DNA of 64,000 nt, from assembly GCA_002269645.1 (NCBI GenBank), contig NIVC01000096.1, forward strand, positions 186,001 through 250,000, in the 5' to 3' direction. Below, piece by piece: positions 1 to 38,100 of this stretch. A program made the translations under genes and the position numbers. Below the pieces are notes generated by a model. That model searched no databases. It was not told the origin of the DNA and saw only the letters and a list, made by a program, of their open reading frames with translations. Source of the stretch: Macrostomum lignano. Lineage: Eukaryota. Each line of letters starts with the position of its first letter. Within the stretch, counting starts at the first letter, position 1.

Positions 1-120
1 GCAACAAATGCAGGAGCAGCAACAAATGCAGGAGCAGCAACAAATGCAGGAGCAGCAACAAATGCAGGAGCAGCAACAAATGCAGGAGCAGCAACAAATG
101 CAGGAGCAGCAACAACAAAA
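1..120 (+). repeat. Coding 18-bp tandem repeat ATGCAGGAGCAGCAACAA (MQEQQQ), at least 6 copies
   Basis: Direct reading; continues to window edge. Confidence 0.95.
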
Positions 121-2083
121 ACAGAAAAAGACGAGTGCAGTTTTGCACATCGTCGTAAAGGGCGGTGAGCGAGCATCGACAGTTCATCTGAGCATTTTCG
201 ATTCCACGAACGAAACGCACGAACGCACGCACGAACTGGAACAAATGACACTTGAAACAGGTGAGCAAATATGGTACTCCAAACTGAATTCTAAAAGTGA
301 CAGAAGACTAGAAAATATAGAAGTGACAGAACATGGCGAACTTAAGACAATCGTGGATGGCTCTCGATCAACGATTGATCAACCAAGACAGGTCAATTTC
401 TCAAGACCAGAAATACTGAAATTCAACCTGAGTGCTATCATTGAAGAGAAATCAATCGACTATCCAATAGAGTTTGACGAAAGGCAACGTTTTGTGCCTC
501 ACTTTTTCAAGGACAAACGAGCGGAGTTTGTTATTAACTGTGACGACCTGACAAATGGTGATTTCCGAGCTCGAGTCATTCCGATGGCACCGATCTGCCT
601 TATCTTCGAATTTCAATCCAATTTGGAAAACACCAATAATAATTTTCAACTTAAAATTAAACATAATAACGACAAGATCGAATTCAACAAGTCTCGTAAA
701 GTTTGCTCAAAATGCATGCAATGCGATGCTGCAAAGCCAGATCACGGAGACGCTCAGGTCTGGACGCTGACGATCGATGATCTGCAGATGGCCAATTATA
801 GCGACTCCATGAGACTGCCTACCGGAGAGCCACTGAGAGTTAAAGTCGTGAAAGCTCAAGATCAAGAGCCTATGATACCTTTCACAGAGTTTTACAACAT
901 CAATCTGCCTGTCGATTATGCAAACCCAACGCAAACGTATCTCATCAAAGTGGACCCTCAGGCTCAGCCCAGAGTGTACGCAGTCAATCACATTGAGCTG
1001 CATTTCGAATGCGAGATTCCGGATGTCAAATTCTTTGAGATTCGGGGAAACTGCAGCGAGTTCGGCTTATGGGAAAAGCCTCTCAAATTTGAGCTTAAAA
1101 ACGAATTCGAAAAGCCGTTATGTGTGCCTGTGGCAGTTGTGGAAGATGATGGATCAAAGCTTTTTAAGACGTTTGATCTGAAAGACTTTCGGTTTGAAGC
1201 GCTGCTTTATTCCGATCCACAAGAGGCGCCTTGGCCAAAAGCATGTACAATTCCACGCCTTCTTGTTCCATTGGAGCCGTTCTCCATATTTATCGTTAAA
1301 ATATGTAATCGAAAAAGAAGTAGTTCTCTCATTCTTCAACCCAGACTCTCAATCACACCAGTCGTCGCTGAAGTCAGTCGCAGGTTGCACAAAGTTCATG
1401 AAACAAATTCAAGCATTCTTGTTCCGAAGTTGCAAAGACTTGGTCAAATCTGCAGTGAGGTCGATGCAGATCCGCAAAGAACGCACGAAATCTGGGGCAC
1501 AGACCTTCTAAAGGAGAACAAAGGTCCTTTAAAGCCAGAAGCAAAGAGCGGATTGACATATCTAAAGCTGAGGCAGACTCGGCATCAACACGAGAGCCTC
1601 TGTGGAAGACGAATCGTTTTGAAGAGGCTTAACAAAAAGTATCACTACTATCAGGACAAAGCTGTTGGAAAGCTCTTAAAATGGAACGACCTAAAATTTA
1701 GTGATGAAAGAAAAGATGCGCTGAAAAAGATCTGCAGAGGTGACGCATCCGATAGCGATTACAAAAACACTTTGCAGACTGTTGCAACAGAAATTTACAA
1801 ACGCAGTGACCAGTGCATTGTCACAAAGCACTTGTCGCTGTTAAAGCTGGCCGCTGCCATTGTTCGCGGCAGAACTGAGGCTCTGATCCTGAGTCCCAGG
1901 GCTCAGAAATGGCAGCGAGATAACTGGGAACGGCACATGGTCGCAGCGGAGTGCTGGTTTCGAGTCGTCTTGGCGCTCTGGGAGACTCGACCCGATGATA
2001 CACCACCAGATTTTCGCGAGGCAATCAGGAGAGCCAATGACAGACCCGCCATTCCCTACTTTTACACTTGGCGCGATAAATGA
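2..2083 (+). CDS. Large single-exon ORF of unknown family (5' end off-window): Q-rich repeat, beta-rich region with CBM20-like motif, C-terminal helical domain; paralog of 27963-29960
   Basis: Frame open from base 2 to TGA at 2081-2083; ~70% aa identity by eye to the 642-aa ORF at 28032; divergence preserves frame. Confidence 0.85.
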   Translation, partial: QQMQEQQQMQEQQQMQEQQQMQEQQQMQEQQQMQEQQQQKQKKTSAVLHIVVKGGERASTVHLSIFDSTNETHERTHELEQMTLETGEQIWYSKLNSKSDRRLENIEVTEHGELKTIVDGSRSTIDQPRQVNFSRPEILKFNLSAIIEEKSIDYPIEFDERQRFVPHFFKDKRAEFVINCDDLTNGDFRARVIPMAPICLIFEFQSNLENTNNNFQLKIKHNNDKIEFNKSRKVCSKCMQCDAAKPDHGDAQVWTLTIDDLQMANYSDSMRLPTGEPLRVKVVKAQDQEPMIPFTEFYNINLPVDYANPTQTYLIKVDPQAQPRVYAVNHIELHFECEIPDVKFFEIRGNCSEFGLWEKPLKFELKNEFEKPLCVPVAVVEDDGSKLFKTFDLKDFRFEALLYSDPQEAPWPKACTIPRLLVPLEPFSIFIVKICNRKRSSSLILQPRLSITPVVAEVSRRLHKVHETNSSILVPKLQRLGQICSEVDADPQRTHEIWGTDLLKENKGPLKPEAKSGLTYLKLRQTRHQHESLCGRRIVLKRLNKKYHYYQDKAVGKLLKWNDLKFSDERKDALKKICRGDASDSDYKNTLQTVATEIYKRSDQCIVTKHLSLLKLAAAIVRGRTEALILSPRAQKWQRDNWERHMVAAECWFRVVLALWETRPDDTPPDFREAIRRANDRPAIPYFYTWRDK

Positions 2084-6940: not shown

Positions 6941-6945
6941 ATGCA

Positions 6946-7354: not shown

Positions 7355-7890
<536 letters not shown>

Positions 7891-9630
7891 GTGAGTAGTT
7901 TATCAAGTTTGGACTTAGGATTAGATGTTTATCGATGAACTAAATTCAAGTCAAACATTTCTGTTATTCGAATACTTGAACTCGATTTGGAAACAATTCA
8001 ACGAACTCGTGCAATCTGCAGCTCTCGTCCCTAGCATTCAATAAAATCGTCCCAGAATTGTACGTTGATATTCATAGAAGCATACATGTATTATACGCGA
8101 TGTTTTGTTTTGTTTTAGCACCGGTTATCTTCTGCCATCACACAGCGGTGGAACAAATGACAGGACCGGAGGAGATGCTTTTCTTTATTGGAGCCACCAT
8201 TTCTATATCTGAAAGCAGCCGAGAAGTGCCTCGTTAGGCTTCAGTTCGTGTGCATTTTTATGAGCTCTACAATTTCATCCCAGCTGCCGCCGATGAGGTG
8301 GGGAACCGCGTTCCTAACGACGGCGGGGTTTACACAACACAGCGCATGCAATTAATAGCACTAGACATGCCCGTAACTACGGGGGCGAGGGCTAGATGGT
8401 TAGACTTAGCGGATTACTCTGGTTGCGTTAGAGCATCTGGGGGGAGCTCAGTTCACTGTCCTTCTGTGCGGGCCGGGCCAGCCAGCCACCCCTCCGTTGC
8501 CACGTCAGGTCGGGGTTGGGCGTCGGTCCCGGGCTTGCCTGCAGCTCCTCCCCAGGAGCGGCCTCCGCGCTGGGCTCATTAAGAATTCTCCGCTTGTCAA
8601 CCGTCCAGGTCAAATTGCCGCCTCGCCTCGCTATGACTGAAATATTTCATATACTATGACTGCAATATTGCAGTTATAGGATTACTGCAATCAATATTTA
8701 CTGACTGCAGTAACATACATGTATTAAGAGCTGCTTAGCGGATTGCAATCATCCTACAGCTTATGCAAAATGAGTTTAATTTACAGGTACATGTTTGACA
8801 GTGATGCTTTTTGAAGACGTCCCATATATTGTTATAAAAATATTCACTTAACCTGCTAGCCTACTGGATTTGACTTTACAACGCTTGAAAACAATAAATC
8901 TGATAGTTTAGTTTCTTAGGAAGCCACAGATTAGTACAGAGTGAGTCTTCATTCCCGAAATTGTATTCCCTCACGTCAGTAGCAGACAGACTCAAAATCT
9001 GCAGCATTGGCCAGCTACAGGATACGGCAGCTTTGCAGATGGCAAGCGGCACACTGCATGCTCACCTCCATCTACAACAAATTTTGCTCTGCTTCAAGCC
9101 TACCTACCAGCATGCTGGCAGCCTGTCGGACAGAGAGGTGAGTAGCGCCTACCTGCACTGCCAAACGGGGGGGGCGGGGGCGGCGCAAGAAATTCCATGC
9201 AGACCCCCATGCTCTGCTCAGATACTCAGAGCCATATAACCATGCCAGCCAGTTGCCACTGGTATCCCAATTGGTGAGTGGCCAAGAGACGACTAGGAGG
9301 GAGTGGGGCAGAGGGAGAGGAAGGTAAGGGAGGCAGACAGGCAAGGAGACAGACCTGCACTGGGAGGAGGTGGTAATAGGAACTCTGGGATTAAAACGGC
9401 GGAAAAGGTGTGCTGCTGCTCCAATGGGAGCTACTCCTGCAAATCGGCAGACTCAACAGTTCTGAGTTGAGCACCCCTGTCCTGTCCAATACAATACTCG
9501 CACCCTGTGTTATAAGTCAAAGGAATCACAGCAACAGTGTTGGTTAGTGCTGCAATGGAATAGAATTGTTTTTGTCTGATGCAGCAAATCATGCTTAGTG
9601 AATTAAATTATGTTGTAAAACACTTGCTCG

Positions 9631-10076: not shown

Positions 10077-10154
10077 TTATTTCGATAATTCATTGTTGGC
10101 TTTGGTATACTCGTACAGGACAATTGCGATAACAAAAAATCTGTATGCTGTGTG

Positions 10155-16149: not shown

Positions 16150-16284
16150 GTCTATGGCTACGGAAACTCCTGAAAGTTCGGAAAAAAAGGAGCGCAAATG
16201 CCTCCATCGATGCCGGTCTTCATCAAGTCTGCCTGATCCGGTTAAAAAGAGAGGGCGAAAATTGCGGACTCTTCTATCATTCAG
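16150..16284 (+). CDS. Variable exon V1 (135 nt, phase 2-2; ATG 16154; MATETPESSEKKERK...LLSFR)
   Basis: CCTGTGCAG|GTCTATGG acceptor, CAG|GTATGG donor, open frame, paralogous flanks. Confidence 0.65.
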
Positions 16285-16787: not shown

Positions 16788-16916
16788 GTCTATGGATACG
16801 GAGGCGCCTGACAGTTCAAGAAAAAAGGAGTACGAAAAGCTCCAATCGATCCGGACCGATCCAATTGAACCGGTTGAGATGACAGGGCCAGAATTATCAA
16901 CTTCTCAATCATCCAG
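16788..16916 (+). CDS. Variable exon V2 (129 nt, phase 2-2; ATG 16792; MDTEAPDSSRKKEYEK...SQSSR)
   Basis: CCTGTGCAG|GTCTATGG acceptor, CAG|GTATAG donor, open frame. Confidence 0.65.
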
Positions 16917-17533: not shown

Positions 17534-17627
17534 ATCCGAGGACAAAGAAGACTGTGGATGGGGAATCGAAGCGGTTCGATCATTCAACGACGAACCCCCA
17601 AAATCGCCACCACTCCCCATTATGTAG
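17534..17627 (+). other. Candidate fifth, out-of-phase module exon (94 nt)
   Basis: TTTTTAACTGCAG| acceptor, TGTAG|GTTTGA donor, sits between the conserved pre- and post-exon modules. Confidence 0.35.
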
Positions 17628-17804
17628 GTTTGAGCTTCAATGTTTTGTGCCATCCACTCCGATAGCTGGCGAATTTTTGATCAATTTGTAGCTGCTGTGA
17701 CGGGCCTTTCAGGACGGAATTTCCCCTTCCCGTTAATCCCGTTAGCTAATTCTATCCACAAAATTGCCAAATAAATCGGCAAAAAAGTCTGAAAACTGAT
17801 GCAA

Positions 17805-20800
17805 GACCGCACTACCGGTGTACCAAATATAAATAGGCTGCCGAGGACTGACAAGAGCTAAACTGTAGTGGCTCGTAGCAGGCTTCATCAGAGAGTATAT
17901 TTTTTAATTATATTTTTAATAGTAACTACGGCTGGGCTCAAGCTTAAAGTAAATATTCAACTCATGGTCTCATACGTCTCATGGTTCAGATGGGTTACAA
18001 ATATGAAGATTTATAAAGAAACTAACATGTATACCAAGCTCTCCGTTAATGTCGGTTCCCATTATCCCTATAGTAGCTCGTAGTTCCGTGGGTCAGAGAT
18101 TGTTGAAATCAGTTTTATTACATTAATGAACTGTGAACCCTGGATAATAAGAGAATAGCAGACGTGTCGATACCGTGCTCGAGATCAAAAGAATCTCCTG
18201 AAGAGTTTACGAGTGGCGATCAGTCACTCAAAACCCCACTTCCAGAACTGAAGCCTGGGAACAGAATTCAGTGATCACACAGAGTATCGGAATCGGTCAG
18301 CAGATCCTATCCAATCTCTGAGGAATAGGAAGGCCTCAAATTCAGTAGCTCAGTAAAATCGACTGATCAGTAATGGCTGGCAATAAAACCGCTCTCGATA
18401 ATCAAATAACGAAGACTCGAACAAAGACTTACCCAATCGGTATCACTTTCCCTCGGAGATATAGTTCTGTCGGACTCGTCAGTTGGCTCTGAGTCTCGAG
18501 AAACTGTTTAAGTCTCTTGGCCGCTCCGAGTCTGAGATATTAGATCGGGGTTTCGGCTTGTATTTATAGGCAAATATTCTTGCGAGAATAAGGATATTTC
18601 GATGAGGTGAAGGGTTCAGTTTTTTGAAATTTGACCCTTTGACAGTTAAATACGAGTAGAAATTTATACAATAGATTTATATCGAATAAAATTAATTTCG
18701 GGGCATCATTTACCTTTTTGGGGTCGTGATTCGTTGTTTACGATATTTGAGGTAAACATATATGGTTCATCTCTTGCTTTATAAATGATTCAAGCTTTTA
18801 AATTCTCCTGCAGTATTTATGCTATTCTACTTACAGTAGCATTTTGTGAACGTGTCTCTCTACACTCTCAGCAAAAATCCTCGCTCCGGCATTTATCTCG
18901 GCTACTTCACTGATATTTCGCACAGAATCGCTAAATCGGCCTGGCCCCCAAAATTGAGCTGGATAGGCGATGCCCTTGGGTTGGTAGCAAGAGGTGTTGT
19001 ATGTCCGCCTAGAGTCTCCCCCTCGGAAACAAGCCTTCCAGACTCACTCCAATAGTTAGCCCTTTCCAAGACTTCTGGGTTTCCCGCTCTTGGACGGCTT
19101 TTCAGTAATAATCCAATTCTGTTTTTCGCGCACTCCCGAGGACCTGTCTGCTGGGGGGTAGCCTGGGTGGACTCGGTCCTAGCACCGTCCCTGATTCCAC
19201 TGTTGGGTTGGCGGTGTCTTGTACCGTAGGCTTGAAGTCCCTCGCTCTTTCCCTAGCTTAAGCTGGGGCCCAACTAAATTGGTTACTCGGACTCCGAGCG
19301 GGTATCTCGCGTGCACAGTTTTTTCTGTGCCCCTGGACAGTGCCCTCTTGCGGTAGAGCCCCTCCAAGGGCTGATCCGCGGGTAGCCCCGTAGCTTCCCA
19401 CCCCCGTTTAACAACAAATCGGCCAAGACAGGCTTGGGCATGGCTCCAAACTCGTTGCCCCGTAGCAGGCTGGGAGCCCCCGTCTCATTAGGGAATTTTC
19501 CTTGGATGCACTTTTATGCAGGTGGCTGGTGGCGGCTACGCACCCTTGGCATGTACCTAGAAACAACCGGACCTGCTACTGTAGTTAAGTTCGAGGGACC
19601 TTGGTCACTCAGTCATACAAGAAGCTACTCACAATTAACTGAGGGAAGCAGTTCCAGGGATTCGAATTCTTAAAGGCAATGTTAATTGAAACTCATTGAT
19701 TTCAATAAGTCTGAAGCAGGACCGCACTACCGGTGTACCAAATATAAATAGGCTGCCGAGGACTGACAAGAGCTAAACTGTAGTGGCTCGTAGCAGGCTT
19801 CATCAGAGAGTATATTTTTTAATTATATTTTTAATAGTAATTACGGCTGTGCTCCAGCTTAAAGTAAATATTCAACTCATGGTCTCATACGTCTCATGGT
19901 TCAGATGGGTTACAAATATGAAGATTTATAAAGAAACTAACATGTATACCAAGCTCTCCGTTAATGTCGGTTCCCATTATCGCTATAGTAGCTCGTAGTT
20001 CCGTGGGTCAGAGATTGTTGAAATCAGTTTTATTACATTAATGAACTGTGAACCCTGGATAATAAGAGAATAACAGACGTGTCGATACCGTGCTCGAGGT
20101 CAAAAGAATCTCCTGAAGAGTTTACGAGTGGCGATCAGTCACTCAAAACCCCACTTCCAGAACTGAAGCCTGGGAACAGAATTCAGTGATCACTTACGGT
20201 TGCGGGCTCCTCTTCTTTGTAGTCCGGGTTGCAATCGCGCGCTGCAAGATTCTCCTAGCTGATTCTGAAGTCGGCGAATATGAGAGCATTTTAATTAAAT
20301 CGTCGTCAATGTGTTCAATAATCCAAATCGGAGATGCGCCCTAATAACAAAGTCAATTCTATAACAATAACGAGGTCCCATAGAGGGCGTCTTCCTTTTA
20401 GAAATAACAGAATCTGAATTGTGTGCCCTTATCTGTTACTCTAGGGTACCAAACTCAATCAAATCAATAATTCTCCAAGAGTATCGGAATCGGTATCGGA
20501 ATCGGTCAGCAGATCCTATCCAATCTCTGAGCAATAGGGAGGCCTCAAATTCAGTAGCTCAGTAAAATCGACTGATCAGTAATGGCTGGCAATAAAACCG
20601 CTCTCGATAATCAAATAACGAAGACTCGGACAAAGACTTACGGAATCGGTATCACTTTCCCTCGGAGATATAGTCCTGTCGGACTCGTCAGTTATCTGAG
20701 TCTCGAGAAACTGTTGAAGTCTCTTTGGCCGCTCCGAGTCTGAGATATTAGATCGGGTTTTTGGCTGGTATTTATAGGCAAATCTTCTTGCGAGAATAAG

Positions 20801-20885
20801 GATATTTCGATGAGGTGAAGGGTTCAGTTTTTTTATATTTGACCCTTTGACAGTTAAATACGAGTAGAAATTTATACAATAGATT
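17805..20885. repeat. Tandem duplication of an unclassified ~0.9-kb unit (17805-18677 and 19720-20885, second copy with 284-bp insertion at 20194-20477)
   Basis: Near-identical sequence by eye; each copy has minus-strand CCTATAAATA and GTAAGT. Confidence 0.85.
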
Positions 20886-21177: not shown

Positions 21178-21342
21178 GTCAATGGGAAACCCTGCTGAAT
21201 TCAAGCTGGAGCACAAGCTGGGGCACAATCTCTTCTTAGAGGTGATCTTTGAACTCGAACACCAACGAGCTGCTGCTACAGGCCGGTCTTCATCAAGTTT
21301 TTCTGAAGGGAGAGAGCCACAAAAATTTTTTATTCGACTCAG
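21178..21342 (+). CDS. Variable exon V3 (165 nt, phase 2-2; ATG 21182; MGNPAEFKLEHK...FFIRLR)
   Basis: AAATGCAG|GTCAATGG acceptor, CAG|GTATGT donor, open frame. Confidence 0.65.
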
Positions 21343-22860: not shown

Positions 22861-23049
22861 GTCAATGGGCAATCTAGCTGGATTCGAAGCTTGGAAAACT
22901 CTAAACGAAATGAAGAAAAAGGACCTCCTAGAGACCGCGATCTCTGCACTCAAACACGAACTAGATGATCTTACCAGGACTTCATCAGGTCGGCCTGATT
23001 TGGTTGAAGAGAGAGAGCCACAAGCAACATTAATTCGTCCATTCTGCAG
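22861..23049 (+). CDS. Variable exon V4 (189 nt, phase 2-2; ATG 22865; MGNLAGFEAWKTLNEMKK...RPFCR)
   Basis: AAATGCAG|GTCAATGG acceptor, CAG|GTACAA donor, open frame. Confidence 0.6.
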
Positions 23050-23441
23050 GTACAACAATTCAATTTTTGTCTTTCACTTCTCATTTCTCAAGTTCTAGGG
23101 ACTCCATTTCCTAATGTGACTTTTCCTAAAACTAGTTGATTTCATTGAGTCTGAGCACTGAAGCAGGACTGCACTACGCTTGTACTGGTAGCTAAATCAA
23201 TATAAATTATTAATACGCATGCACCACTTTTAGTATTTAGAGGCTGCAGAGGACTGACGAGAGCCAAAATGTCGCGCTTGTAGCAGCCTTATTAAAAAGC
23301 ATATCTAAAAAGTCCCTAAAGAAATCGGCAAAAGGGGACGACTTAGTTTGAAAACCCTCCAACATAACACTTTTACTCATTGCTTGCTCAATCTACCAAT
23401 GAACTGCTCCTTTTTCTACAAAATTTTCACCTATAAATAAA

Positions 23442-26173: not shown

Positions 26174-26966
26174 GCATCCAAAAGCAACAACCGATCAAGA
26201 AGCAACAACCGATCAACAAGCAACAACCGATCAAGAAGCAACAACCGATCAAGAAGCAACAACCGATAAAAAAGCAACAACCGATCAAAAAGCAACAACC
26301 AATCAAAAAGTAACAACCGAGCAAGAATCAACAACCGAGCAAGAATCAACAACCGAGCAAGAAGCAACAACCGAGCAAGAAGCAACAACCGATCAAGAAG
26401 CAACAACCGATCAGGATACTAAAGTTTCCAATAATCAACAAAACTCCCTATTCGACAAGAACTCGGTGCTCACAGACTTGACGTACTCTCTGTGCTGCAT
26501 TCCCAACCTGCCAGTTAGACTGACCAGCCACCAGAGCGTCAGAGGCATCTACGCTCGGTACTTGATGCCAGATGAGGCAGTGAGGAAGACCACTGATTGG
26601 GAAGAGAAGAAGCAGTCAGTTCTGCAGATGCTGCCCACCAGTCTGCGTGAAGTTTTCACTGAAGAAGAACTCCGTGAAGATGAAAAGCTGTGTGTAACTG
26701 AGCTGGCAATCAGCATTGCAGAGGGCGAGTGGCCGTTTGAAGAAAAGGACGCGAGAAGTTTGCTTCAGAACTCAGCTGAAATCGTTCGCAGTCACCTCCA
26801 AGCCCTGCAACTGAGCGCAGATCAGCCTCGGGACTGCTGCCCAGTGGCAGAGGCCTGGTTCTGCTTCATGGTGGCCGTGTGGAGCCGCCTCAGGACTGCC
26901 GTGACCGAGCCTGAGGACGAGGCTGAGAAGTTCGACGCATGTATGGGCAATAGGACTGTGAGTTGA
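26174..26966 (+). CDS. Downstream exon C1 (phase-2 acceptor): Thr-rich ATTDQE repeats plus novel domain shared with 28032 ORF
   Basis: TTTTCTCACTATTTAG|G CAT CCA acceptor; open to TGA 26964-26966; motifs EAVRK..DW, IVR...AL.LS, AE.WF match the paralogous ORF; possible donor GTGAGT at 26958. Confidence 0.75.
26182..26412 (+). repeat. Coding 18-bp repeat AAGCAACAACCGATCAAG (ATTDQE), ~13 copies
   Basis: Direct reading. Confidence 0.92.
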
Positions 26967-27289
26967 GTCTTCTGGCTTGTTCGTCACGCTCTGGACACGA
27001 TCATATTTGAGTATGTGAGGACCATGGTTTTTGTTTGCCCCAGATACTGTAACATTATTTCATTTGTCAAGTGCACACCTTGAACTTTTTAAAATGGGGT
27101 CCTATAGAAACCTCAAATTTTTAACTGAACGAAAAATCGAGCATTTTTTCATTGAGAATTCAATGAGAAAATCATGTGGTGGTGCCGAAATTTCATGAAG
27201 TGTTGATATCAAGTCATAAAATGGTCGACCTTTCCTCGACCTACACGTTTGTAAGGATTACTCTATTTATTAACTCGATATTGCTGGAT

Positions 27290-27422
27290 CGATCAAAGCT
27301 TTTTTATTTTAAGACGTTTGATCTGAAAGACTTTCGATTTGAAGTGCTGCATTATTCTGATCCATCGCCTTGGCCAAAAACATGTACAATTTCGCGCCTT
27401 CAAGTTCTACCGGAGCCGCTCA
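27290..27422 (+). pseudogene. Orphan ~130-bp fragment of the unknown ORF family (SKL..FKTFDLKDFRFEVLHYSDPSPWPKTCTISRL)
   Basis: Clear match to 1154-1280 and 29042-29175; no splice sites evident. Confidence 0.85.
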
Positions 27423-27962
27423 TTTTTTTTTCCTTATTATAAAAAACTGTGATAATTCTGAACAATATTGTTAATGAGAGAGATAAAGAGAATTTTTGCC
27501 ATTTTCACCTATTTTTCTCATTTTCTATTTTCCCCTATTTTTCCTATTTTCCCTTTTGCAATTTTTCCTGTTTGCCAATTTTCCTATTTAGCCATTTTTT
27601 CTATTTTGCCATTTTTTCTATTTTTGGCTGGCTCGAATAAAAATAAAACAGCTAAAAGTCTTAAAATTTACAAGGCTTTGCTGTTCTTCTCTTGCCACAT
27701 TATTTTCACAATTTATGATAGGGATAGCTCACCAAAGAGCAGTGTGCATTTCACAAACTTCTAAACTACAGTTTCTCGCTTTTTATAATTCAGTTTTATC
27801 GCTAGCTATAGAAGGAAAAACAGTTAGCAGTACAACAAAACTTGATATTTTAGCAGAACAAAAGCTTTTTAGTTTCCTGAGAAATTGAAGCCACATTCAA
27901 TTGCTTCTTAATTCAGTTAGCTGTATAGTTTAAATTTGAACTTGACTTTTCCTAACTCTCAG

Positions 27963-29960
27963 TTCCAGCAGCAGTAACAGATCGCGCCTGGAAAAAGAAA
28001 GAAATAAATAAAGCAACAACAGCAGCAACAAATGCAGCAACAAATGCAGGAGCAGCAACAACAAGAACCGAAAAAGACGAGTGCAGTTTTGCACATCGTC
28101 GTAAATGGCGGTGGGCGAGCGTCGAGAATTCAGCTCAGCATTTTTGATGCCGCAGAGACTAGGTCGCACAAACTGGAACAAAAGACACTTGAAACAGGTG
28201 AGCAAATATGGTACTCAAAACTGGATACTGACGGCGATAGAAGATTGGAAAATATAGAAGTGACAGATGATGGCGAACTCGAAAGCAAGACAACCAAAGA
28301 AATACTGCAATTCAAACTGAGTGCTACCATTGAACAGGAATCACTCGACTATCCGATAGAGTTTGGCGAAGGGACCCGGTTTGTGCCTCACTTTGTCAAG
28401 GACAGCCATGTGGAGTTTGTTATTTACTGTGACCTGACAAATGGCGAGTTCCGAGTCATTCCGATGGCACCGATCTGCCTTATCTTCGAATTTCAATCCA
28501 AGTTGGAAAACACCAATACTAATTATCAACTTGAAATTAAACACAACAATGATAAGATCGAATTCCACAAGTCTCGTAAACTTTGCACAAAGTGCATGCA
28601 ATGCGATCCTGCAATGCAAGATCACGGAGACGCACAGGTCTGGACGCTAGATAAACCCAGCGAGATTATCTACCTGGCCAATTATAATGACTCCATGAGA
28701 CTGCCTACCGGAGAGCCACTGAGAGTTAGAGTCCTGAAAGCTCAAGCTCAAGAGCCTATGGTACCTTTCACAGAGTTTTACGACATCAATCTGCCTGTCG
28801 ATTATGCAAATCCAACGCAAACGTATCTAATCAAACTGGACCCTCAAGCTCAGCCCAGAGTGTACGCAGTCACTCACATTGAGCTGCATTTCGAATGCAA
28901 GATTCCAAATGTCGAATTTTTCGAGATTCGGGGAAACTGCAGCGACGAGTTTGGCTTATGGGAAAAGCCTTTTAAATTTGAGATCGAAAACGAACCAAAA
29001 AAGCCGTTATGGGTGGCTGCGGCAGTTGTGGAAGATGAGGGGTCAAAGCTTTTCAAGACGTTTGATCTGAAAGACTTTCGATTTGAAGTGCTGCCCCATT
29101 TCAAAAAGCAACAAGAGGCGTTTTGGCTAAAAACATGTACAATTTCACGCCTTCCAGTTCCATTGGAGCCGTTCTCCGTATTTATAATTGAAATGTGTAA
29201 TCTAAAAACAAGAAATATTGTTTCGCTTCAACCCAGGCACTCAATCGAACCAGTAGTCAATGAAGTCATTCGCAGGTTGCGCGAGATTTCAGATAGTCGT
29301 TTGAGCACGAAAGGCTTAACAATTCTTGTTCCTAAGTTACGCAGACTTGGCCAAATCTACAGTGAGGACGATGATCCGCAAAGAACTCACGACATCTGGG
29401 GCGAAGACCTTCCAATGGAGACACCTGATGATCTTGACCCAGCAGCGAAGAGCGGATTGACCTATCTGCAGCTGAGGCAGACTCGGCATCAACATGAGAG
29501 CCTCTGTGGAAGACGAATCGTTTTGAAGAGGCTTAACAAACAGTATCACCGCTATCAGAACGAAGCTGTTAGAAAACTCTTGGACTGGAACGCCGATGAA
29601 GTAAGAAAAGCTGCGCTGAATAAAATCTGCAGAGGTGGCGCATCCGATGGCGAATACAAAAACATTTTGCAGACTCTTGCCACAGAAATTCACGAAGGCA
29701 CTTGCAGAGTCGAAGATCACTCGCTGCTGCTGTGGCTGGCTGCTGCCATTGTTCGCGGCAGAGCTGAGGCTTTGATTCTGAGTCCCAGGGCTCAGACATG
29801 GCAGCAAACTAATTGGGAACGGCACATGGTCGCTGCGGAGTCCTGGTTTCGAGTCGTCTTGGCGCTCTGGAAGACTCGACCCGATAAGAGAGCAGACTTT
29901 CGCGAGGCAATCCGCAGAGCCGGTGAAAGTCCCGCCTTTTACACTTGGCGCGAGAATTGA
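27963..29960 (+). CDS. Downstream exon C2 / 642-aa ORF of unknown family (ATG 28032); paralog of 2-2083
   Basis: Strong acceptor TTTTCCTAACTCTCAG| at 27962; 1.9-kb open frame; apparent 1-nt frameshift at 28006-28008 upstream of the ATG. Confidence 0.85.
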
Positions 29961-30865
29961 ATGTAACTTTCGAATGATATTCGGTTTGATTTACTGATTG
30001 CATGCAGTAGCTATATTCACTTTAGCTATTTTCACTTTCTCTCGCTAACCTGAAATTCATATCGAGAAACCATAACTGTAAAATTTAGTTTTATGTAAAA
30101 GATATTTCAGCTCCGGATGTGTCTTACATTCATGTACATGTAATCTGTCCGTTTGCCATTGTACGACCAAGGACCATGTAGCAGCATATCAGGACGCTAT
30201 GAGAATAATTTGTTCCCATCTTCTGAGGTGGGAAAAATAATTTTTATGACAAAATCAATCAAGGAACAAAATAAAAGTTTAGCTAATGACACCTGTGAGT
30301 ATTGACAACTTGGGCTTAAAAAATAAAAAGCAATGTGAAAAATGAAACTTTCAGGGCACAACAATAAAGAAGAAAGCAGAGCAAAATGCTGTGCATGTTA
30401 AATTAAAAGAATGGCAATCTTCTATTTGCAATCATTAAATTTGTGATGAAAAAATGATTGTTTCCTTTTCTATCTCCGTAGTGCATTTTTGCGTTAATCG
30501 GCCTCCAAAAACTGCACGATCTTTGAGTGTAGCGTCCGGATATACTGCTAGTGGTCCTTGTGTACAACCTATTATATGCTTTACACTGCAGACTCTCAAA
30601 GTACATTATCATTTTCCTAGCTGTTAGCAATTCGGTAATTTGCTAGTTTGCTGTTAGAAACAATATGTAACAAAAAGTTACCAATATTTCTGAACTATCT
30701 TTGCCAAAGCAAGACTGATATGTGTTTCAGCATGACCTGCTGTAACGTGCCTATAACTATTGGTGTCAGTAGTTAGAAATTATGTCTTTAAATTCTGCTT
30801 ACTTCAAATATACTACACATACTACTAATACACACCATCTAGCCGGTAATATTCGAGTCAGTCAC

Positions 30866-31085
30866 TGAAGTTCGCTGAAGGGATTCTTTGGCCGCTGCCG
30901 CAATGCCAGGCGACAGTCAGCCCGGCAGCCAGCAGTCATGCCAGCTCCGCTGACCCCCTGACGCTCACACCGGGTGTACATCGGGCCTGACTGTCTCGCT
31001 GTCAGACAGGGTGCACATCTTGCGTGTTGGCCTGCACTGTCACAGGTTAGAGAGCCACCTACTCATGAGTTTCTCTCTCAAACAT
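30866..31085. mobile_element. 220-bp insertion with 8-bp TSD (TCAGTCAC)
   Basis: TSD at 30858-30865 and 31086-31093; absent at the orthologous site (~3020) of the left duplicate. Confidence 0.7.
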
Positions 31086-31579
31086 TCAGTCACCTCAAAA
31101 TATTGTTCTGAAAATATTTGTGAGCAGCAACTTTATTCGATCAGAAACTGAGCAAAGATCAAAAATGCACCGCTCCATCATTTTTATTCAGCCAAACAAA
31201 AATAGCAGACAAATTGGTTGCTGTGTCAGCTTAAACTGCTTGAAAATATTATTGATAAATTGTATTTTTACCTTAGCAGCAGGACAATGGCTAAACAGTA
31301 TGAATGCCACTGGCACAGCGTGGCACAATGTCACTACTGGCTGCTCAGCCGTCATGCATGTATTGTGAAGTACATAGCAGATGAGCACTTCTTAATGAGT
31401 ATGATGAGAGTTGAGCTTGAATCAGCATTTTTACAGCGAAGTTCAGCACAGACAGTAAAATATGCGGCATCTTCAATGAGCCCTAGCAACAGGACTGTTT
31501 ACATTGGATACGACAGTGTTGAATGCACCGAGGCAGTTCAATAAGAAAGCAGAAATATTGTAAATTGAGACTGGGGTGA

Positions 31580-31795
31580 AGGAGGCTGGAGACGAAGGAG
31601 TCTATGGATGAGGGATTTTGGAGTTAAGAGTCTAGAGATGAAGGAATCTGGACATGCAGGAGTCTGGAGATGCAGGGTCTGGAGATGAGGAGTCCAGACA
31701 TGCAGGAGTCTGGAGATGCAGGAGTCTGGAGATGAGGAGTCCAGACATGCAGGAGTCTGGAGATGCAGGAGTCTGGAGATGCAGGAGTCTGGCAG
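31580..31795. repeat. 16-bp repeat in BTAF1 3' UTR
   Basis: Direct reading. Confidence 0.85.
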
Positions 31796-31820
31796 CTGAA
31801 GAACTCAAAGCCGTGGAGCA

Positions 31821-32139
31821 TCAGGACAGCAGCTGCACGAACTGGCTCATGTCGAACTCCTCCTCGTAGTCCACAGTCAGCTCAGCCTCCGCAGCTGACG
31901 CGCCCGAAGCTGAAGTCGCCGGCATCGAGCTGAGCACCGAGCCCAGCGTCTTGGACATCGCCTGCTTGGCTCTCTGCCTGGAGGCCGAGTCCCTGCTGTC
32001 TGCCGCCGACTTGCCCGAAGCTGCTGAGCCGGAGGAGAACTCGAACAGGTCCAGCAGCTGCTCGGTGCCGAGCGACTCCACGCTGGCGTTGTCTGCGTTC
32101 ACCACCGAGTTGGCGACTGCCGTCTTGAACTTCTGGTAC
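31821..32139 (-). CDS. BTAF1: BTAF1 exon 17 (terminal)
   Basis: [13 protein letters not shown]...YEEEFDM; TGA 31821-31823. Confidence 0.95.
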
Positions 32140-35100
32140 CTGCGGGGAGCGGGTGGCGGTGCTGCTGGCGCTAGGAATCCTCTGGCTGAGGTGCTCGATT
32201 CTCAGCACTGAATAAATCCCCACAGCATCCCTCTAATCCCCACAGCATCCCTCAAATCCCCACAGCATCCCTCAAATCCCCACAGCATCCCTCAAATCCC
32301 CACAGCATCCCTCAAATCCCCACAGCATCCCTCAAATCCCCACAGCATCCCTCAAATCCCCACAGCATCCCTCAAATCCCCACAGCATCCCTCAAATCCC
32401 CACAGTATCCCTCTAATCCCTACAGTATCCCTCTAATCCCCACAGTCACAATCACAATATTATTATTTATACTAAATCTCTAAGGTTTGTCTGTCTGTCT
32501 GACCGGTATTCCAGTCTACAGCCTGAATGCCTGTACCGATTTTTTTCAAACTTGCTTCATTCAATTGCAAATTCTTGTGAGATTGTGTAGGTGTAATTGC
32601 ATTGAAAAATTCGAATGACAAGTTGGTTAAATATTCGAAAAACGAGTTTTTTTAATGCTTTCAATGGGAGGCTAGAAAAGGTCAAAATCTCACTGACTGA
32701 ATTTCAATTCCAATTAAGATTGCGCCACAACTTTTCTCTGTTCACTGTGTACGCCTCAATACTAGCTGCAATAAGGGAGAGGAAAATAATGCTCAGTGGC
32801 TGCGTGTGTACATTTTTCTCTGGCTGACTGGCGGACTGCATAGACAATTGCTATTTATAGATTTCACTCAACTGTGCATTGGCTCTGCCTGCGCACTGAG
32901 CAGCCTATCACTGCTATGTATTTGACTGCAGTGTCGAAGCTTATATGGCTGATTTTCTCGCCTTTCCATCAATAGGCGGAGTAGCCGCATGTAGGCACTA
33001 GGTTTAGGCTAGGCGTAAGGTCCCAGGTTCGAGTCCACCTCGCTGCGAACAATTAAATTTGAATTAATTTATATTTATTTGTAACTTATGCATGGACTAA
33101 TTAGAACATCTTTCGATTAATATTGATTAATAGCGATTGAAATTTTTTTATTAAGTAAAGCAATGAATTATTTTTGCTAATCGGCACAAGCCACTAAGCA
33201 AATTTGATTTGTAAAATTGCTTCAAGTCTGGCTGATCTCATCAATGGGCGTTGCCTAGCTCCATTTAAAGTATGAAATTGCTAAAATGCAGACAATGCTG
33301 CTAAACTGCTGAAGGCATAGGCACAGCTAAATCCGAGTTGTGCAAAAGTCCGCCGATATGTATCGAACACTGATTAATGAGTCGTACTAAATGCTGAGAA
33401 ATGTTTTAAATTGTTGAAAGGATCATTGCAAGTTTGCTGAGACTGAGGAGCCAGCCGAGAGAACTGCAGAATGCTTGGGGATGAATGAGAATTCTTGAGG
33501 GAATAGTATAGGCTTCTCTTCGAAAATAGCCTCTCTTCGAAAGCAGATGGTCGGCAATTGGAGTCTGCATTGAAGCTGAAAAGTATACCTATAACTTTGA
33601 AATTTTGAAATTTTCATTGAATGATATAGCTTTTTGCAGCCCATTTGGGCTTACGTGCATTTAATTTAATCCAAATTGATTTGCCTAAGTAAATGAGCTT
33701 ATTGTCTATGGTAGAAAGGCTGGCACAGCGGCACTTAATTTAGTCCAACAAGCATCAATTTGGTCCATAGCTTCATTTGCAACTGTTGCGGAGGAGCAAG
33801 ATCAGCTCCATAATTGTGAACCATGCTAGGTCGTCGAATGAATGCCACTGGCTTGTGATCAAAGCAATCAACAGAGGTGAACACCCAAAGGACATTGCAA
33901 GGTTGCTGAATATATTGTAGAAGAAAGATGGTTTACAGCATCCATCAGCGTGTTGAAACCACTTCTGGCATAGGTCGCCTGTGAAAGGTGGCAATCGCCA
34001 AGGCAAGTTGCTAGAGACTCAGTTCCAACTGCTACTTAATGCAATTGAGACGAACCCTTTGTTGACGGAGCAGAAAAGGCAACAGAAGTTGAAGGAAAAG
34101 TTCCAGTTGGTTATCAGATTTGGACTATCAGCAGAGCTCTGGAAAAGCGACTGAAAATTGCTGGTACAGACGCTGACATTCCAGCGGTGCGCAACAAACC
34201 TTAGGCGGTTGCGAGAAGGCAAGAGTTTGCCATTGGCTCACAAGCATTTGGACCAAATTGATGCTTGTTGGACTAAATTAAATGCCGCTGTGGCAGCCTT
34301 TCTACCATAGACAATAAGCTCTGTTACATTGGCAAATGTATCTTGGATTAAATTAAATGCGCGTAAGCCCAAATAAACTGCAAAAAGCTATATTATTCTG
34401 GGACTGCATTAATCTTTTAGATCAGTGCCAATCTACGAGTATTGTATGTGCTAATTTGCAGAGAGAATTACTAATCTGGAAGAGTGGTGCTAATCTGGAG
34501 GAGTAGTGCTAATCTTGGCAAAGTGTTGCTAATCTGGAGGAGTAGTGCTAATCTTGGCAAATTGTTGCTAATCTGAGCGGAGTGCTAATTATTAGGGGTA
34601 GTGGTGCTAATCTGGGGGGAAGTCTGGGGGCTCAGTAATGCTAATCTGAGGAGCGGTGCTAATCTGGGGGAGCGGTGCTAATTTTGTATAAAACTGTGCT
34701 AATTTTTGGGGAGTGGTGCTAATCTGGGGGTGGTGCTGATCTGGGGGAGTGGTACTAATCTGGGGAGCGGTGCTAATCCGGGGAAGTGGTGGTAATTTTT
34801 GGGGAGTGGTGCTAATAGTGCTAATCTGGGGGAGAGGTGCTAATAGTGCTAATCTGGGGGAGTGGTGCTAATCTGGGGGAAGAAGCACAGAACTTTCAGT
34901 GATGTAAGTTCTGTGGGAAGAAATGCTAATCTGGGGGAAGTAGTGCTAATCTAAGGAAGTGGTGCTACTTTTGGGGGAATGGTGCTAATCCGGGGAGTGG
35001 TGCTAATCTGGGGAAATAGTGCTAATATATAATTTTCTAATATACTAAAAGTCCTACCTTTGTTTGTCTGTTTGTGAATAACGCATTTAATACTGAATGC

Positions 35101-38100
35101 CTCAACCAAATTTGATCGCGTTTTTTTTAAACTTGCAAAATTCTTCACCTTAAAATTTTAGTGACCTTGGATTTTACCTTAAAAAATTCAAATATTTGCT
35201 TGGAGAACTGCAGAATGCTGGGGGGATGAATGAGAATTCTCAAGGGAGCAGTAAAGGCTTCTCTTCGAAAATAGCCGCGTTGTAGAGGCAAAGCAGATGG
35301 TGGGCAATTCGAGTCTGCATTGAAGTAGAAAATTTATCCCCATAACTTGTGACAACATTGATGTCACCTCCAATGCAGATTGACGCAGATTTTTCGAAAT
35401 GTTCATTTAATTATTCTGGGACTGCATTAATCTTCTACAGCAGTGCAAGTCTATTGTATGCGCTAATTTTCAGAGACCATTACTGACAAAGTCTTGGCAA
35501 AGTGTTGCTAATCTGGAGTGCTAATTTAGGGGTAGGGGTGCTAATCTAGGGGGAAGTAGTGCTAATCTGGGGGGAAGTAGTGCTAATCTGAGGAGCGGTG
35601 CTAATCTGGGGGGAATAGTGCTAATCTGAGGAGCGTTGCTAATCTGAGGAGCGGTGCTAATCTGGGGGGAAGTAGTGCTAATCTGAGGAGCAGTGCTAAT
35701 CTGGGGGGGTAAATAGTGCTAATCTGAGGAGCGTTGCTAATCTGAGCAGCGGTGCTAATCTTGGAAAAGTGTTGTTAAGGTGAGTGGTGCTGAGTTTGTT
35801 TTTGCAAAAATGAGAAAAAGTAATTTTTGATTAATGGAAATGGTAATTATGGTTACCATTGGACCAAAATAAAAACCACTTGGTGTCATTTCTAAGGCCC
35901 CCCAGCGGGGGGGCTAATGGCTAGTATCCCTCTAATCCCCGAAACAACTTGGAAGTATTCCGAAATTTCATAAAGCACCGTAGAAATTCTCAGGCCAGAG
36001 TCTCATCATCAGAGCTGGCCTAACAACCCAGAACTCTAGCAACCAAGAACCATCCACCGTAGCAATCCATAAGTTCTCCTGGAAACAATCCCTTAGCAAC
36101 CCAGAACTTCCCATGACAACCCCAGAATTCCTTCTAGAATTCCAGAACACCCATAGCAACTCAGAACATACCCTAGCAACCAGAACTACCCCTAGCAACC
36201 ACCGTATCAACCAAGAGCCAGAACTCCCCTTGGCAACCACCGTATCAACCAAGAGCCAGAAATCCCCTAGCAACCACCGTATCAACCAAGAGCCGGAACT
36301 CCCCCTAGCAACCACCATAGCAACCAAGAGCCAGAACTTCCCAGAAACCCCCAGCAACCCAGAACCCCCCAGTCCACGCACTTCATGATCTTCTCCTCGA
36401 TGGTGTCCCTGGTGAGCAGTCTGTAGACGCTCACAGCCCGAGTCTGTCCGATCCGATGCGCCCTGTCCATGGCCTGCAGATCCCGCATGGGGTTCCAGTC
36501 GTGATCAACAAAGATCACGGTGTCAGCGCCAGTCAGGTTCAGACCGAGGCCCCCAACAGAGGTTGTCAATAGCAACGCATCGATGCTGGGGTCGGAGTTG
36601 AACTTCTGCACCAGACTGTGTCGGTCAGCGGCTGGCACCGAGCCGTCCAGCCGCAGGTGCTGCATGTCGCTGTCCTTGAAGACCAGCTTCTCAACGAGGT
36701 CCAGAGTGGCTTTGGTCTGAGCGAAGAGCAGCACTCGGTGCTGACTCACCACGCCCAGCCGGCTGTCTCCCGTGATCCCAATGTCTGACAGCAGCTGGCG
36801 CAGTGCCAGGAACTTTCCAGAGTTTTCCACGGTGGCCACGTTCTTGTGCTGCTGCTGCTGCTGGGGACTCGAACCAAGGACCAAGGCTGGGTGATTGCAG
36901 ATCTTGCGCAGGAAGTGCAGCGCCTGCGGTTTCAAATGGGGATATTGGGGATCAGAGTGGCAGCTTGAGCACGCGAAGGGATACACTCAGGATTGAGTGT
37001 CCGGTCCCTCAGATTGAGTGTACGATCCCTCAGATTGAGTGTCCGGTCCCTCAGAATGAGTGTCCGGTCTCTCAGATTGTGTCAGGTCCCTCAGATTGAG
37101 TGTACGATCCCTCAGATTGAGTGTCCGGTCCCTCAGATTGAGTGTCCGATCTCTCAGATTGAGTGTACGATCCCTCAGAATGAGTGTACGATCCCACAGA
37201 TTGAGTGTACGATCCCTCAGATTGAGTGTCCGGTCTCTTAGATTGAGTGTCCGATCTCTCAGATTGAGTGTACGATCCCTCAGAATGAGTGTACGATCCC
37301 ACAGATTGAGTGTACGATCCCTCAGATTGAGTGTCCGGTCTCTTAGATTGAGTGTCCGATCTCTTAGATTGAGTGTCCGGTCCCTCAGATTGAGTGTCCG
37401 GTTCCCTCAGATTGAGTGTCTCAGATTGAATGTCCGATCTCTCAGATTGAGTGTCTCAGATTGAGTGTCTCAGATTGAGTGTCCGGTCCCTTAGATTGAG
37501 TGTACGATCCCTCAGAATGAGTGTACAATCCCTCAGATTGAGTGTACGATCCCTCAGATTGAGTGTCCGGTCTCTTAGATTGAGTGTCCGATCTCTCAGA
37601 TTGAGTGTCCGGTCCCTCAGATTGAGTGTCCGGTTCCCTCAGATTGAGTGTCTCAGATTGAGTTTCCGGTCACTCAGATTGAGTGTCCGGTTCCCTCAGA
37701 TTGAGTGTCTCAGATTGAGTTTCCGGTCACTCAGATTGAGTGTCCGGTCCCTCAGATTGAGTGTCCGGTCCCTCAGATTGAGTGTCCGGTTCCCTCAGAT
37801 TGAGTGTCTCAGATTGAGTTTCCGGTCACTCAGATTGAGTGTCCGGTCCCTCAGATTGAGTGTCCGGTTCCCTCAGATTGAGTGTCCTATCTCTTAGATT
37901 TTGTGGCCGATCTCTCAGATTGAGTGTCCAGTCCCTCAGATTGAGTGTCCGGTCTCTCAGATTGAGTGTCCGATCTCTCAGATTGAGTGTCCGGTCCCTC
38001 AGATTGAGTGTCCGGTTCCCTCAGATTGAATGTCCTATCTCTTAGATTTTGTGGCCGATCTCTCAGATTGAGTGTCCGGTCCCTCAGATTGAGTGTCTCA

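Follow-up and report, generated by a model that had tools for sequence, protein, structure and literature searches.

Two neighbouring genes sharing an undescribed helical end-domain probably account for a Macrostomum lignano locus

The interval 26174-29960 of a 64,000-nucleotide stretch of Macrostomum lignano DNA (the window) is best explained by two separate neighbouring genes, which share a genus-restricted and undescribed helical end-domain by ordinary duplication and not by combinatorial splicing. We give this reading a probability of about 0.8. The interval would then comprise the 3' end of one gene (gene A) and the whole of another (gene B), both on the forward strand. Gene A would run through the exons V1, V2, Vx, V3 and V4 (16.1-23.0 kb) into the terminal exon C1, which would encode a variable hexapeptide repeat rich in Thr, Asp and Glu, then a helical domain of about 170 amino acids, and would stop at 26964. 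Gene B, called C2 here, would be intronless and encode 642 amino acids behind a short 5'UTR starting at a conserved acceptor, most likely a spliced-leader site; its protein would join a beta-rich N-terminal half to the helical domain at the C-terminus. The helical module may tether differing N-terminal parts, and the short gene-A protein, as a module-only protein, may then partner or compete with the long forms. The features of the interval on which this reading is built are:

26174..26966, forward strand: C1 terminal exon, with phase-2 acceptor tttag/G and its own stop TGA at 26964-26966
26182..26413, forward strand: 18-nt in-frame tandem repeat of 12.9 copies (TRF), encoding (A/S)TT(D/E)Q(E/K)
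26436..26963, forward strand: C1 copy of the helical domain (BLASTP, hhalign, HMM; dN/dS 0.37-0.56 between loci)
28032..29960, forward strand: C2, a complete intronless gene of 642 aa with its ATG at 28032 (ORF, full-length paralogs)
29322..29957, forward strand: C2 C-terminal module, aa 431-642, made up of an LVP..HDIWG lead-in and the helical bundle (hhalign, AF2 domain model)

C1 (26174-26966) has the domain in common with the C-terminus of C2 (28032-29960), and a third copy forms the 3' end of the ORF at 8-2083, where the same motifs lie at about 1540-2000. In the frame of 26175, C1 carries DLTYSLCCIPNLPVRLTSHQSVRG, DEAVRKTTDW, AEIVRSHLQALQLS and AEAWFCFMVAVWS in that order; the C-terminus of C2 carries GLTYLQLRQTRHQHESLCG, NEAVRKLLDW, AAIVRGRAEALILS and AESWFRVVLALWK, also in that order. 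All motif strings quoted in the initial annotation of this DNA were found again in C1, C2 and ORF 8-2083. That annotation had left the significance of the matches to a profile alignment, which was run here. The C1 family aligned against the C2 family with an hhalign E of 2.6e-6, and an HMM built from C2-type sequences and larger relatives, with no C1 sequence in it, scored the C1 of the window at 37.3 bits (per-sequence E 1.3e-13), while the maximum over 2000 shuffles was 8.3 bits. BLASTP of C1 against C2 gave E 3e-5 with 32% identity over 123 aa. The similarity between the two copies far exceeds chance. C1 is about 30% identical to C2, the shared part of the C2 module begins at about 29448, and the two genes are old paralogs in the domain only.

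C1 is predicted, from its acceptor, its stop and its relatives, to be the last exon of a multi-exon gene separate from C2. Two M. lignano proteins, P0004 and P0017, terminate at the homologous ...CMGNRTVS stop, and AATAAA occurs downstream of the C1 stop at 27636 and 27642. A GTGAGT lies within the end of C1 (26958-26963); spliced from this donor (26958) to the acceptor at 27962, the frame would read FQQQ-stop. The TGA at 26964, the AATAAA near 27636 and the FQQQ-stop product had all been read correctly before, and so had the conclusion that C1 and C2 are not consecutive exons, as C1 stops at its own TGA just as P0004 and P0017 do. The exon has the make-up of a C1-type short form, being a phase-2 terminal exon with the domain and the ...CMGNRTVS stop, where the junction from V4 to C1 is inferred at this locus. 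The C1 of the window has no ATG of its own. The spliced-leader ATG was tried as initiator and rejected, as it is in the wrong frame and meets a stop after 31 codons; expression of C1 would therefore hang on the V4-to-C1 junction.

The gene design can be read from a related locus (L004), in which the P0017 gene has four exons (6001-6050, 6544-6687, 7868-7981 and 10551-11325). Every junction is in phase 2, the last exon ends at the C1-type stop, and the exon 6544-6687 is of the V type with the same 3' splice-site motif. P0004 has the same exon design. In addition, P0010, from another sample, is a divergent C1-type ORF with 46% identity and its own ATG. Given P0010, the short form appears to be old and maintained, as far as the compared sequences indicate.

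C2, by its reading frame and its paralogs, is considered an autonomous gene that lacks introns and brings its own ATG. In the annotation each paralog is a single protein of 625-643 aa which starts at the same point, and the gene of one of them (P0001) is one uninterrupted exon. The M. lignano annotation behind these models is an RNA-seq assembly with spliced-leader and poly(A) evidence (PMC5730564). C2 and ORF 8-2083 are 69% identical over the full length, and the family is collinear from the initiator Met to the stop. The exact C2 protein of the window is not on record in the public assemblies in which it was looked up.

C2 had been proposed as an alternative terminal exon to C1, and entry into it was followed in all frames. 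From the acceptor at 27962 the C2 frame meets stops at 27975 and 28005, the phase-2 frame also stops, and phase 1 does not bring the C2 ATG into frame. Nor does any AG that follows the last in-frame stop and precedes the conserved C2 body accept a phase-2 donor. C1 accepts phase 2 and C2 cannot, which, together with the ATG of C2 and its single-protein paralogs, speaks against the proposal.

The upstream exons assigned to gene A are:

16150..16284, forward strand: V1, opening the coding sequence of the public model, 135 nt (divisible by 3), ATG at 16154, phase-2 donor; 100% match to P0016 aa 1-44
16788..16916, forward strand: V2, symmetric phase 2-2 exon of 129 nt; 100% match to P0016 aa 44-87
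17534..17623, forward strand: Vx, symmetric phase 2-2 exon of 90 nt without homology to the V units; P0016 aa 88-117
21178..21342, forward strand: V3, symmetric phase 2-2 exon of 165 nt; 100% match to P0016 aa 118-172
22861..23049, forward strand: V4, symmetric phase 2-2 exon of 189 nt; P0016 aa 168-250

Among public models, P0016 alone covers these exons (UniProt A0A1I8HLH2, M. lignano). It is 100% identical to V1, V2, V3 and V4 and its residues 88-117 are read exactly from Vx, which identifies the window as M. lignano DNA; it runs through the V4 donor to a stop in the intron (23096-23098) without reaching C1. The V4 donor, CAG/GTACAA, is in phase 2 and compatible with the C1 acceptor. A conserved branch point, a Y-tract, a CAG acceptor and a length divisible by 3 are found in all V exons. 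The V1 acceptor has the conserved form TAACTGCCAAC..Y-tract..TGCAG, and for Vx the splice sites were read from the sequence as acceptor AG/ATCCGAGG and donor AT/GTAGGT. V2 is homologous to exon 2 of P0017. A homolog of exon 1 of the L001 and L004 genes (M..CCQ..NC..CK) was sought in the window and none was found.

These exons bear directly on the reading in the initial annotation, a combinatorial locus with four to five alternative N-terminal exons, each spliced to either C1 or C2. All V exons end in phase 2, which C1 accepts; each V-type exon, exon 2 of the L004 gene included, has an ATG in frame 4 nt past the acceptor and could in principle start a protein; and C1 and C2 have domain and strand in common. 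We nevertheless regard such a locus as extremely improbable, and for C2 it is already largely refuted, since C2 is not enterable in frame from a phase-2 donor and C2-type genes are annotated as single proteins from the same ATG, one of them confirmed as a single exon. Nor do the V exons have the structure of mutually exclusive first exons, which would carry a donor only and a 5' end of their own. They have strong acceptors and lengths that are multiples of 3, they follow one another within P0016, and in P0017 an exon of the V type has an internal position. They look like cassettes belonging to the C1 gene and not like the alternative N-termini for which they had been taken, though they may be used alternatively.

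With two separate genes as the preferred reading, the pair can be compared with its copies. In this neopolyploid genome the gene A-gene B pair has been copied, flanks included, so that it is present at four loci or more. In L001, L002 and L004 an intact C2-like ORF lies about 0.8-1.1 kb downstream of a C1-type exon; the genes called at these other loci omit the C2-like ORFs of L001 and L004 as well as the C1-like exon of L002. The number of symmetric 2-2 cassette exons is 5, 2 or 0 depending on the genomic copy. The hexapeptide repeat also differs in copy number, with a much longer run in L002 and none in L001 and L004. The 1.9-kb C2 ORFs are intact at dS 0.14-0.24, and dN/dS is 0.59-0.72 for C2; C2 values of 0.6-0.8 indicate weak constraint. 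Two further features of the window belong to this comparison:

8..2083, forward strand: second C2-type gene, 691 aa, in a segmental duplication with 27.6-43.4 kb
27257..27436, forward strand: orphan intergenic fragment of C2 type (about C2 aa 313-373; tblastn)

In a self-blastn the orphan fragment aligns at 27307-27421 with 29051-29174; at the equivalent position of L001, L002 and L004 it is absent. This stray piece just downstream of C1 would fit an explanation in which C1 is a decaying partial duplicate of a C2-type 3' end, that is a pseudo-exon, and C2 alone is functional. Neither the C1 of the window nor that of L002 has its own ATG, the 5' parts of C1 are wholly different between loci, and the L002 copy is missing from the called genes. 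Still, four loci have an undisrupted C1 ORF, at a dN/dS of 0.37-0.56, the C1-type exon is the last coding exon in the RNA-seq-derived models P0004 and P0017, P0010 is a short-form ORF that has an ATG itself, and an identity of about 30% to C2 means that C1 is not a recent copy. We consider decay of C1 improbable.

The two genes of the preferred reading are separated by 808-1067 nt between the C1 stop and the C2 acceptor in four loci. The acceptor itself is found at:

27950..27962, forward strand: conserved branch-point/acceptor TCCTAACTCTCAG, 5' of C2 (four-locus comparison)

It is kept in all four loci, L002 differing by one or two substitutions. The resulting 5'UTR from acceptor to ATG is 26-69 nt long across the loci (69 nt in the window), and the frame is not kept. 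The acceptor at 27962 is probably a spliced-leader trans-splice site in the 5'UTR. It may be supposed, tentatively, that genes A and B form an operon, with one polycistronic precursor that is polyadenylated after C1 and trans-spliced to the spliced leader at 27962. The common strand, the length of the gap and the conserved acceptor close to the C2 ATG are in keeping with it. In M. lignano, operons have been defined by a distance of at most 1 kb after repeat adjustment and a trans-spliced downstream gene, and an estimated 15% of the genes belong to operons (PMC8629364). On the other side, the usual intercistronic distance peaks near 100 bp and the acceptor hexamer TCTCAG does not exactly fit the enriched motif [T/C]TNCAG (PMC8629364), and the pair recurs across loci through recent segmental duplication, not through independent retention. 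At the protein level an operon is compatible with the explanation by two genes. Neither an Rfam nor a tRNA scan yielded a match in the window.

The structure of the domain was predicted from the domain alone. The AF2 model has six helices and a core pLDDT of 80-89, and a Foldseek search with it returned only generic helical bundles (best E 0.23, TM<=0.35). No Pfam hit was shared among 12 members of the domain family, and a profile search of PDB gave no sequence relative (best E 0.77). For full-length C2 the AF2 model was of low quality (pLDDT 49.8), and no more than an all-beta N-terminal half was concluded from it. The N-terminal part of about 290 aa is beta-rich, and the N-terminal half is predicted to be all-beta; Foldseek with the full-length model gave generic tandem beta-sandwiches (TM<=0.3), where the best match of the N-terminal half was a CBM26.

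An HMM search of 1.84 billion protein representatives gave 11 hits. The named domain-bearing hits are all from Macrostomum lignano, and besides these only two unnamed entries of the library had the domain. The domain had been described as unrecognised, helical and lineage-specific, and all three attributes hold. Hits to three proteins with short Ala-rich repeats (P0012, P0014 and P0015) and to an Amphiura Calx-beta protein (P0013) were judged spurious or compositional and not counted as members. The domain is C-terminal in every domain-bearing hit except the 4007-aa protein P0007. At least six architectures contain it, of which some include CBM20 modules. The C-terminal module of C2 matches the C-termini of P0005, P0006, P0008 and P0009 with hhalign probabilities of 98-99%. 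CBM_20 (PF00686) is above the Pfam gathering threshold of 23.3 bits in P0005 (37.8 bits) and P0006 (24.0 bits); in C1, C2 and ORF 8-2083 Pfam gave no CBM_20 match at E<=1. The N-terminus of C2 was compared with the CBM20 modules of P0005 and P0006, and no link was found (best hhalign E 0.05; the iterated module HMM did not grow).

Apart from one Arg, nearly all residues kept in both the C1 and the C2 type are hydrophobic or aromatic, a pattern more in line with a module for packing or interaction than with an enzyme. From this conservation pattern and the architecture only, our best guess is that the domain may be a non-catalytic helical-bundle module for interaction or assembly. A more speculative and rather doubtful extension is that gene A is a small diversity generator, with expandable 2-2 cassettes and an in-frame VNTR. 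If exons were skipped, or the spliced leader were joined to any one of the V exons, a module-only protein with many different N-termini would result, which would pair with or antagonise the CBM20-type long proteins via the domain.

The main value of the analysis is the corrected annotation: two genes are to be called here in place of a single combinatorial locus, with the V exons assigned to the C1 gene. Furthermore, an undescribed C-terminal helical module is now defined and is a candidate for registration as a new family of domains. As RNAi and transgenesis exist for M. lignano, the family is experimentally tractable. Otherwise it is an ordinary, fast-evolving, lineage-specific gene family amplified by polyploidy.

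The closest relatives of C2 are BOX15_Mlig021936g1 (PAA91076), Mlig031750g1 and Mlig033770g2, which agree with it in length, start and two-part architecture and are 60-77% identical over 94-99% of C2; the gene of BOX15_Mlig021936g1 is a single exon, like C2. They are paralogs at other loci without name, domain annotation or published function, and literature searches found nothing on the Mlig gene IDs or on Macrostomum CBM20. For C1 the closest are BOX15_Mlig022669g1/g2 (PAA81080, PAA75088), 87% identical to C1 (for g1 the comparison spans the entire domain). Stop and phase-2 acceptor agree with those of C1, and g2 also has a V-type internal exon. They differ from the C1 gene in exon 1 and in a unique N-terminal segment that replaces the ATTDQE repeat. 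A0A1I8HLH2, identical to the V exons of the window, ends short of C1.

Animal proteins with the starch- or glycogen-binding module CBM20 include STBD1, laforin and GPCPD1. The distant relatives P0005 and P0006 resemble these in having a CBM_20 module, which, unlike in the known proteins, is not detected in C1 and C2, and the helical C-terminal module has no counterpart there. In the clustered protocadherins and UGT1A, paralogous short 5' exons stand in an array before a constant exon and use one splice phase, each variable exon having its own promoter and no acceptor. The V array is similar in that paralogous short exons with one splice phase precede C1. It differs in that the V exons have a strong conserved acceptor, are symmetric and are used consecutively in public models, and in that the second 'constant' exon is a separate gene.

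The window is AT-rich, eukaryotic DNA laden with minisatellites, and the exons and reading frames concerned are the following.

Exons of the C1 gene and reading frames of C2 type
8-2083: ORF, 691 codons, 69% identical to C2 from end to end
16150-16284: V1, 135 nt, paralogous unit, open, ends in phase 2
16788-16916: V2, 129 nt, paralogous unit, open, ends in phase 2
17534-17623: Vx, 90 nt, 2-2 exon between V2 and V3, unrelated to the V units
21178-21342: V3, 165 nt, paralogous unit, open, ends in phase 2
22861-23049: V4, 189 nt, paralogous unit, open, ends in phase 2
26174-26966, plus strand: C1 (frame 26175), from the 3' splice site tttag|G (26173/26174) to TGA 26964-26966; an 18-nt unit repeated 12.9 times and coding for (A/S)TT(D/E)Q(E/K), then a unique segment of ~175 aa
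28032-29960: C2, uninterrupted ORF of 642 codons from its ATG

Each string quoted in the initial annotation was found in the sequence, as were GTGAGT at 26958, AATAAA at 27636 and the FQQQ-stop reading past the acceptor at 27962. Between C1 and C2 lies a lone C2-type fragment of ~180 nt (27257-27436, corresponding to aa ~313-373), nearer to the 8-2083 copy than to C2, adjoined by a T-rich 8/17-nt repeat (27491-27625) and not found in the three paralogous loci L001, L002 and L004.

C2 is a gene and not an exon. A search with C2 retrieved three proteins from Macrostomum lignano, 625-643 aa long (60-77% identity); the annotated paralogs share its length and start point, and the gene of P0001, a C2-type protein, is a single uninterrupted exon of 1932 nt. 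These annotations come from genome-guided RNA-seq assembly, with gene ends placed by means of reads carrying the spliced leader or poly(A) (PMC5730564). Upstream of the ATG the C2 frame is interrupted at 27975 and 28005, the phase-2 frame has stops too, and past the last in-frame stop before C2 there is no AG fit for a phase-2 donor. Hence C2 cannot serve as the alternative terminal exon for which it had been taken. A branch point and acceptor, TCCTAACTCTCAG|TTCCAGCAGCAG, is kept upstream of the ATG in all four loci (one or two substitutions in L002), and acceptor and ATG are 26 to 69 nt apart, without frame being preserved. From its context it looks like a 5'UTR acceptor and, since ~30% of M. 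lignano genes receive a 35-nt spliced leader (PMC8629364), it is most simply a candidate trans-splice site.

C1 is the last exon of a gene distinct from C2, and the V exons are part of that gene. The C1 domain matched a 272-aa M. lignano protein (87% identity), and the upstream exons matched P0016 (UniProt A0A1I8HLH2), which is 100% identical to V1, V2, V3 and V4 and reads them consecutively, Vx being included exactly as aa 88-117 between V2 and V3. V1-V4 have in common a strongly conserved 3' splice region, TAACTGCCAAC...TGCAG|GTC(A/T)ATGG, and the donor CAG|GTA; their interiors are diverged and unequal in length. As their lengths are multiples of three and they are open with phase-2 ends, the V exons are symmetric 2-2 exons, readable through one another. 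The RNA-seq-derived model P0017 from L004 was exactly reconstructed (6001-6050, 6544-6687, 7868-7981 and 10551-11325): exon 2 is of V type, with the same splice motif in an internal position, every junction is in phase 2, and the final exon, of C1 type, ends ...CMGNRTVS-stop. P0004 from L001 has the same phase design without cassette exons, that stretch being replaced by a LINE and satellite. P0016 continues into the intron after V4, not into C1; we infer the V4-C1 junction in the window from phase compatibility and the paralogs. The original interpretation is therefore kept in part: C1 ends at its own stop, as in P0017, and the domain is novel and lineage-specific; C2 as alternative terminal exon falls away, and so does the combinatorial V x C matrix, the V exons being symmetric, consecutive in P0016 and internal in P0017, and C2 a separate gene.

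An in-frame ATG stands exactly 4 nt past the acceptor (AG|NNNNATG) in the V-type exons at 16150, 16788, 21178, 22861 and L004 6544, and likewise in the C1-type terminal exons L004 10551 and L001 19429; the spliced leader's own terminal ATG would be out of frame with this start. Directly upstream of V1 lies a 5.2-kb array (10153-15337) of an 18-nt satellite, TGGGGGATGCTTGCTATC, with ~285 copies, 95% matches and all three plus frames open; dozens more minisatellites occur in introns and intergenic DNA. In the Vx-V3 intron a ~0.9-kb segment is doubled (17796-18677 and 19711-20885, 96-98% identity), probably a recent local duplication or repeat element.

C1 and C2 are neighbouring paralogous genes present in several copies by segmental duplication, and the pair is possibly one transcription unit resolved by the spliced leader. 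The match to P0016 shows the window itself to be M. lignano DNA, and L001, L002 and L004 (GCA_002269645.1) are 85-92% identical paralogous or homeologous copies in this neopolyploid genome. In all three the C1-type stop is followed by an intact ORF of C2 type; AATAAA signals occur over the initial 300-700 nt beyond the stop, and the C2 acceptor comes at 808-1067 nt. The cassette array holds 5, 2 or 0 exons depending on the copy, and L001 and L004 lack the ATTDQE repeat, which runs longer in L002. Public annotation gives only one member of the pair at each of these loci, missing the intact C2-like ORFs L001 21043-22950 and L004 12166-14070 and the C1-like exon L002 7807-8895. Retroelement ORFs lie ahead of the C1-type gene or within it in L002 (a reverse transcriptase) and L001 (10755-15885; a LINE-like ORF of 946 aa). 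A ~260-355-aa ORF (MSDPIIHYINWGNLP...) that may resemble the N-terminal part of tyrosine recombinases of the Crypton type is present twice in L002; the L002 ORFs concerned, reverse transcriptase included, are at 1974-3005, 4365-5432 and, on the minus strand, 126-905. Within the window, 1-7100 and 27600-43400 form a segmental duplication, and in each copy the C2-type gene is followed by the 3' exons, on the minus strand, of a helicase gene of the SNF2 family, with Helicase_C in the ORFs at 4016-4726 and 36282-36986. The first copy seems to be cut short past about 7.1 kb. The helicase ortholog in L002 is BTAF1/Mot1-like (1789 aa, HEAT/DUF3535/SNF2).

The family is fast-evolving. Four C2-type ORFs of 1.9 kb have stayed open at dS 0.14-0.24 with dN/dS of 0.59-0.72, and the C1 domains have dN/dS of 0.37-0.56. 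Because P0010, on contig L003 from an unrelated sequencing run, is a 226-aa ORF of the short form that begins with its own ATG and is 46% identical to C1, the short form appears old and maintained rather than a fresh pseudogene.

Judged by sequence comparison, the domain common to C1 and C2 is real, and the motif similarity noticed in the initial annotation is significant. BLASTP of C1 against C2 gave E 3e-5 (32% identity over 123 aa), and profile-profile comparison of three C1-type with six C2-type sequences E 2.6e-6. The cleanest test was an HMM trained on C2-type sequences and larger relatives only, C1 sequences being left out: the window C1 scored 37.3 bits (per-sequence E 1.3e-13), against a maximum of 8.3 bits for 2000 C1 shuffles. 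Conserved columns are L-T-Y, Y..Y, EA.RK, LL..(S)A.IVR....AL.LS and AE.WF....W...F; those invariant in both types (L, A, R, W, F, W, F) hold no polar constellation suggesting catalysis. The AlphaFold model of the domain alone has six helices (core pLDDT 80-89, mean 63; pTM 0.58). A direct reading of the two protein sequences shows no hydrophobic signal at either N-terminus.

Searching 1.84 billion cluster representatives with the profile gave 11 proteins, spurious repeat matches included. These apart, the named matches are all from M. lignano, namely P0005 (649 aa), P0006 (1525 aa), P0008 (1348 aa), P0009 (529 aa) and P0011 (1848 aa, module copies partial); also among the matches are the Logan short form and an unnamed 4007-aa MetaClust entry, whose domain is nearly identical to the one in P0006. 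C2 residues ~431-641 align to the C-termini of P0005, P0006, P0008 and P0009 with 98-99% probability (hhalign). In the long forms the module begins earlier (LVP...HDIWG) and ends FY.W; C1-type proteins have it from LTY onwards only. The N-terminal 290 residues of C2 are predicted to be all-beta.

As to function, we would give roughly one chance in three to a mechanism in which the helical bundle is an intracellular interaction module tethering varied N-terminal parts. In the long forms these would be arrays of beta-sandwiches, some of them glycan-binding, and in the short form cassettes of low complexity. The neighbouring short-form gene would then supply a module-only partner or competitor. 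The conclusion on gene structure is much firmer than this mechanism.

With regard to known families, Pfam CBM_20 is above threshold in P0005 and P0006, and no CBM20 is demonstrable in C2. No Pfam family was matched consistently across 12 family members, no PDB sequence relative of the family profile was found, and Foldseek gave no PDB fold neighbour of the domain model (best E 0.23), in agreement with the initial view of an unrecognised domain. The domain family is undescribed and genus-restricted, and its novelty is modest.
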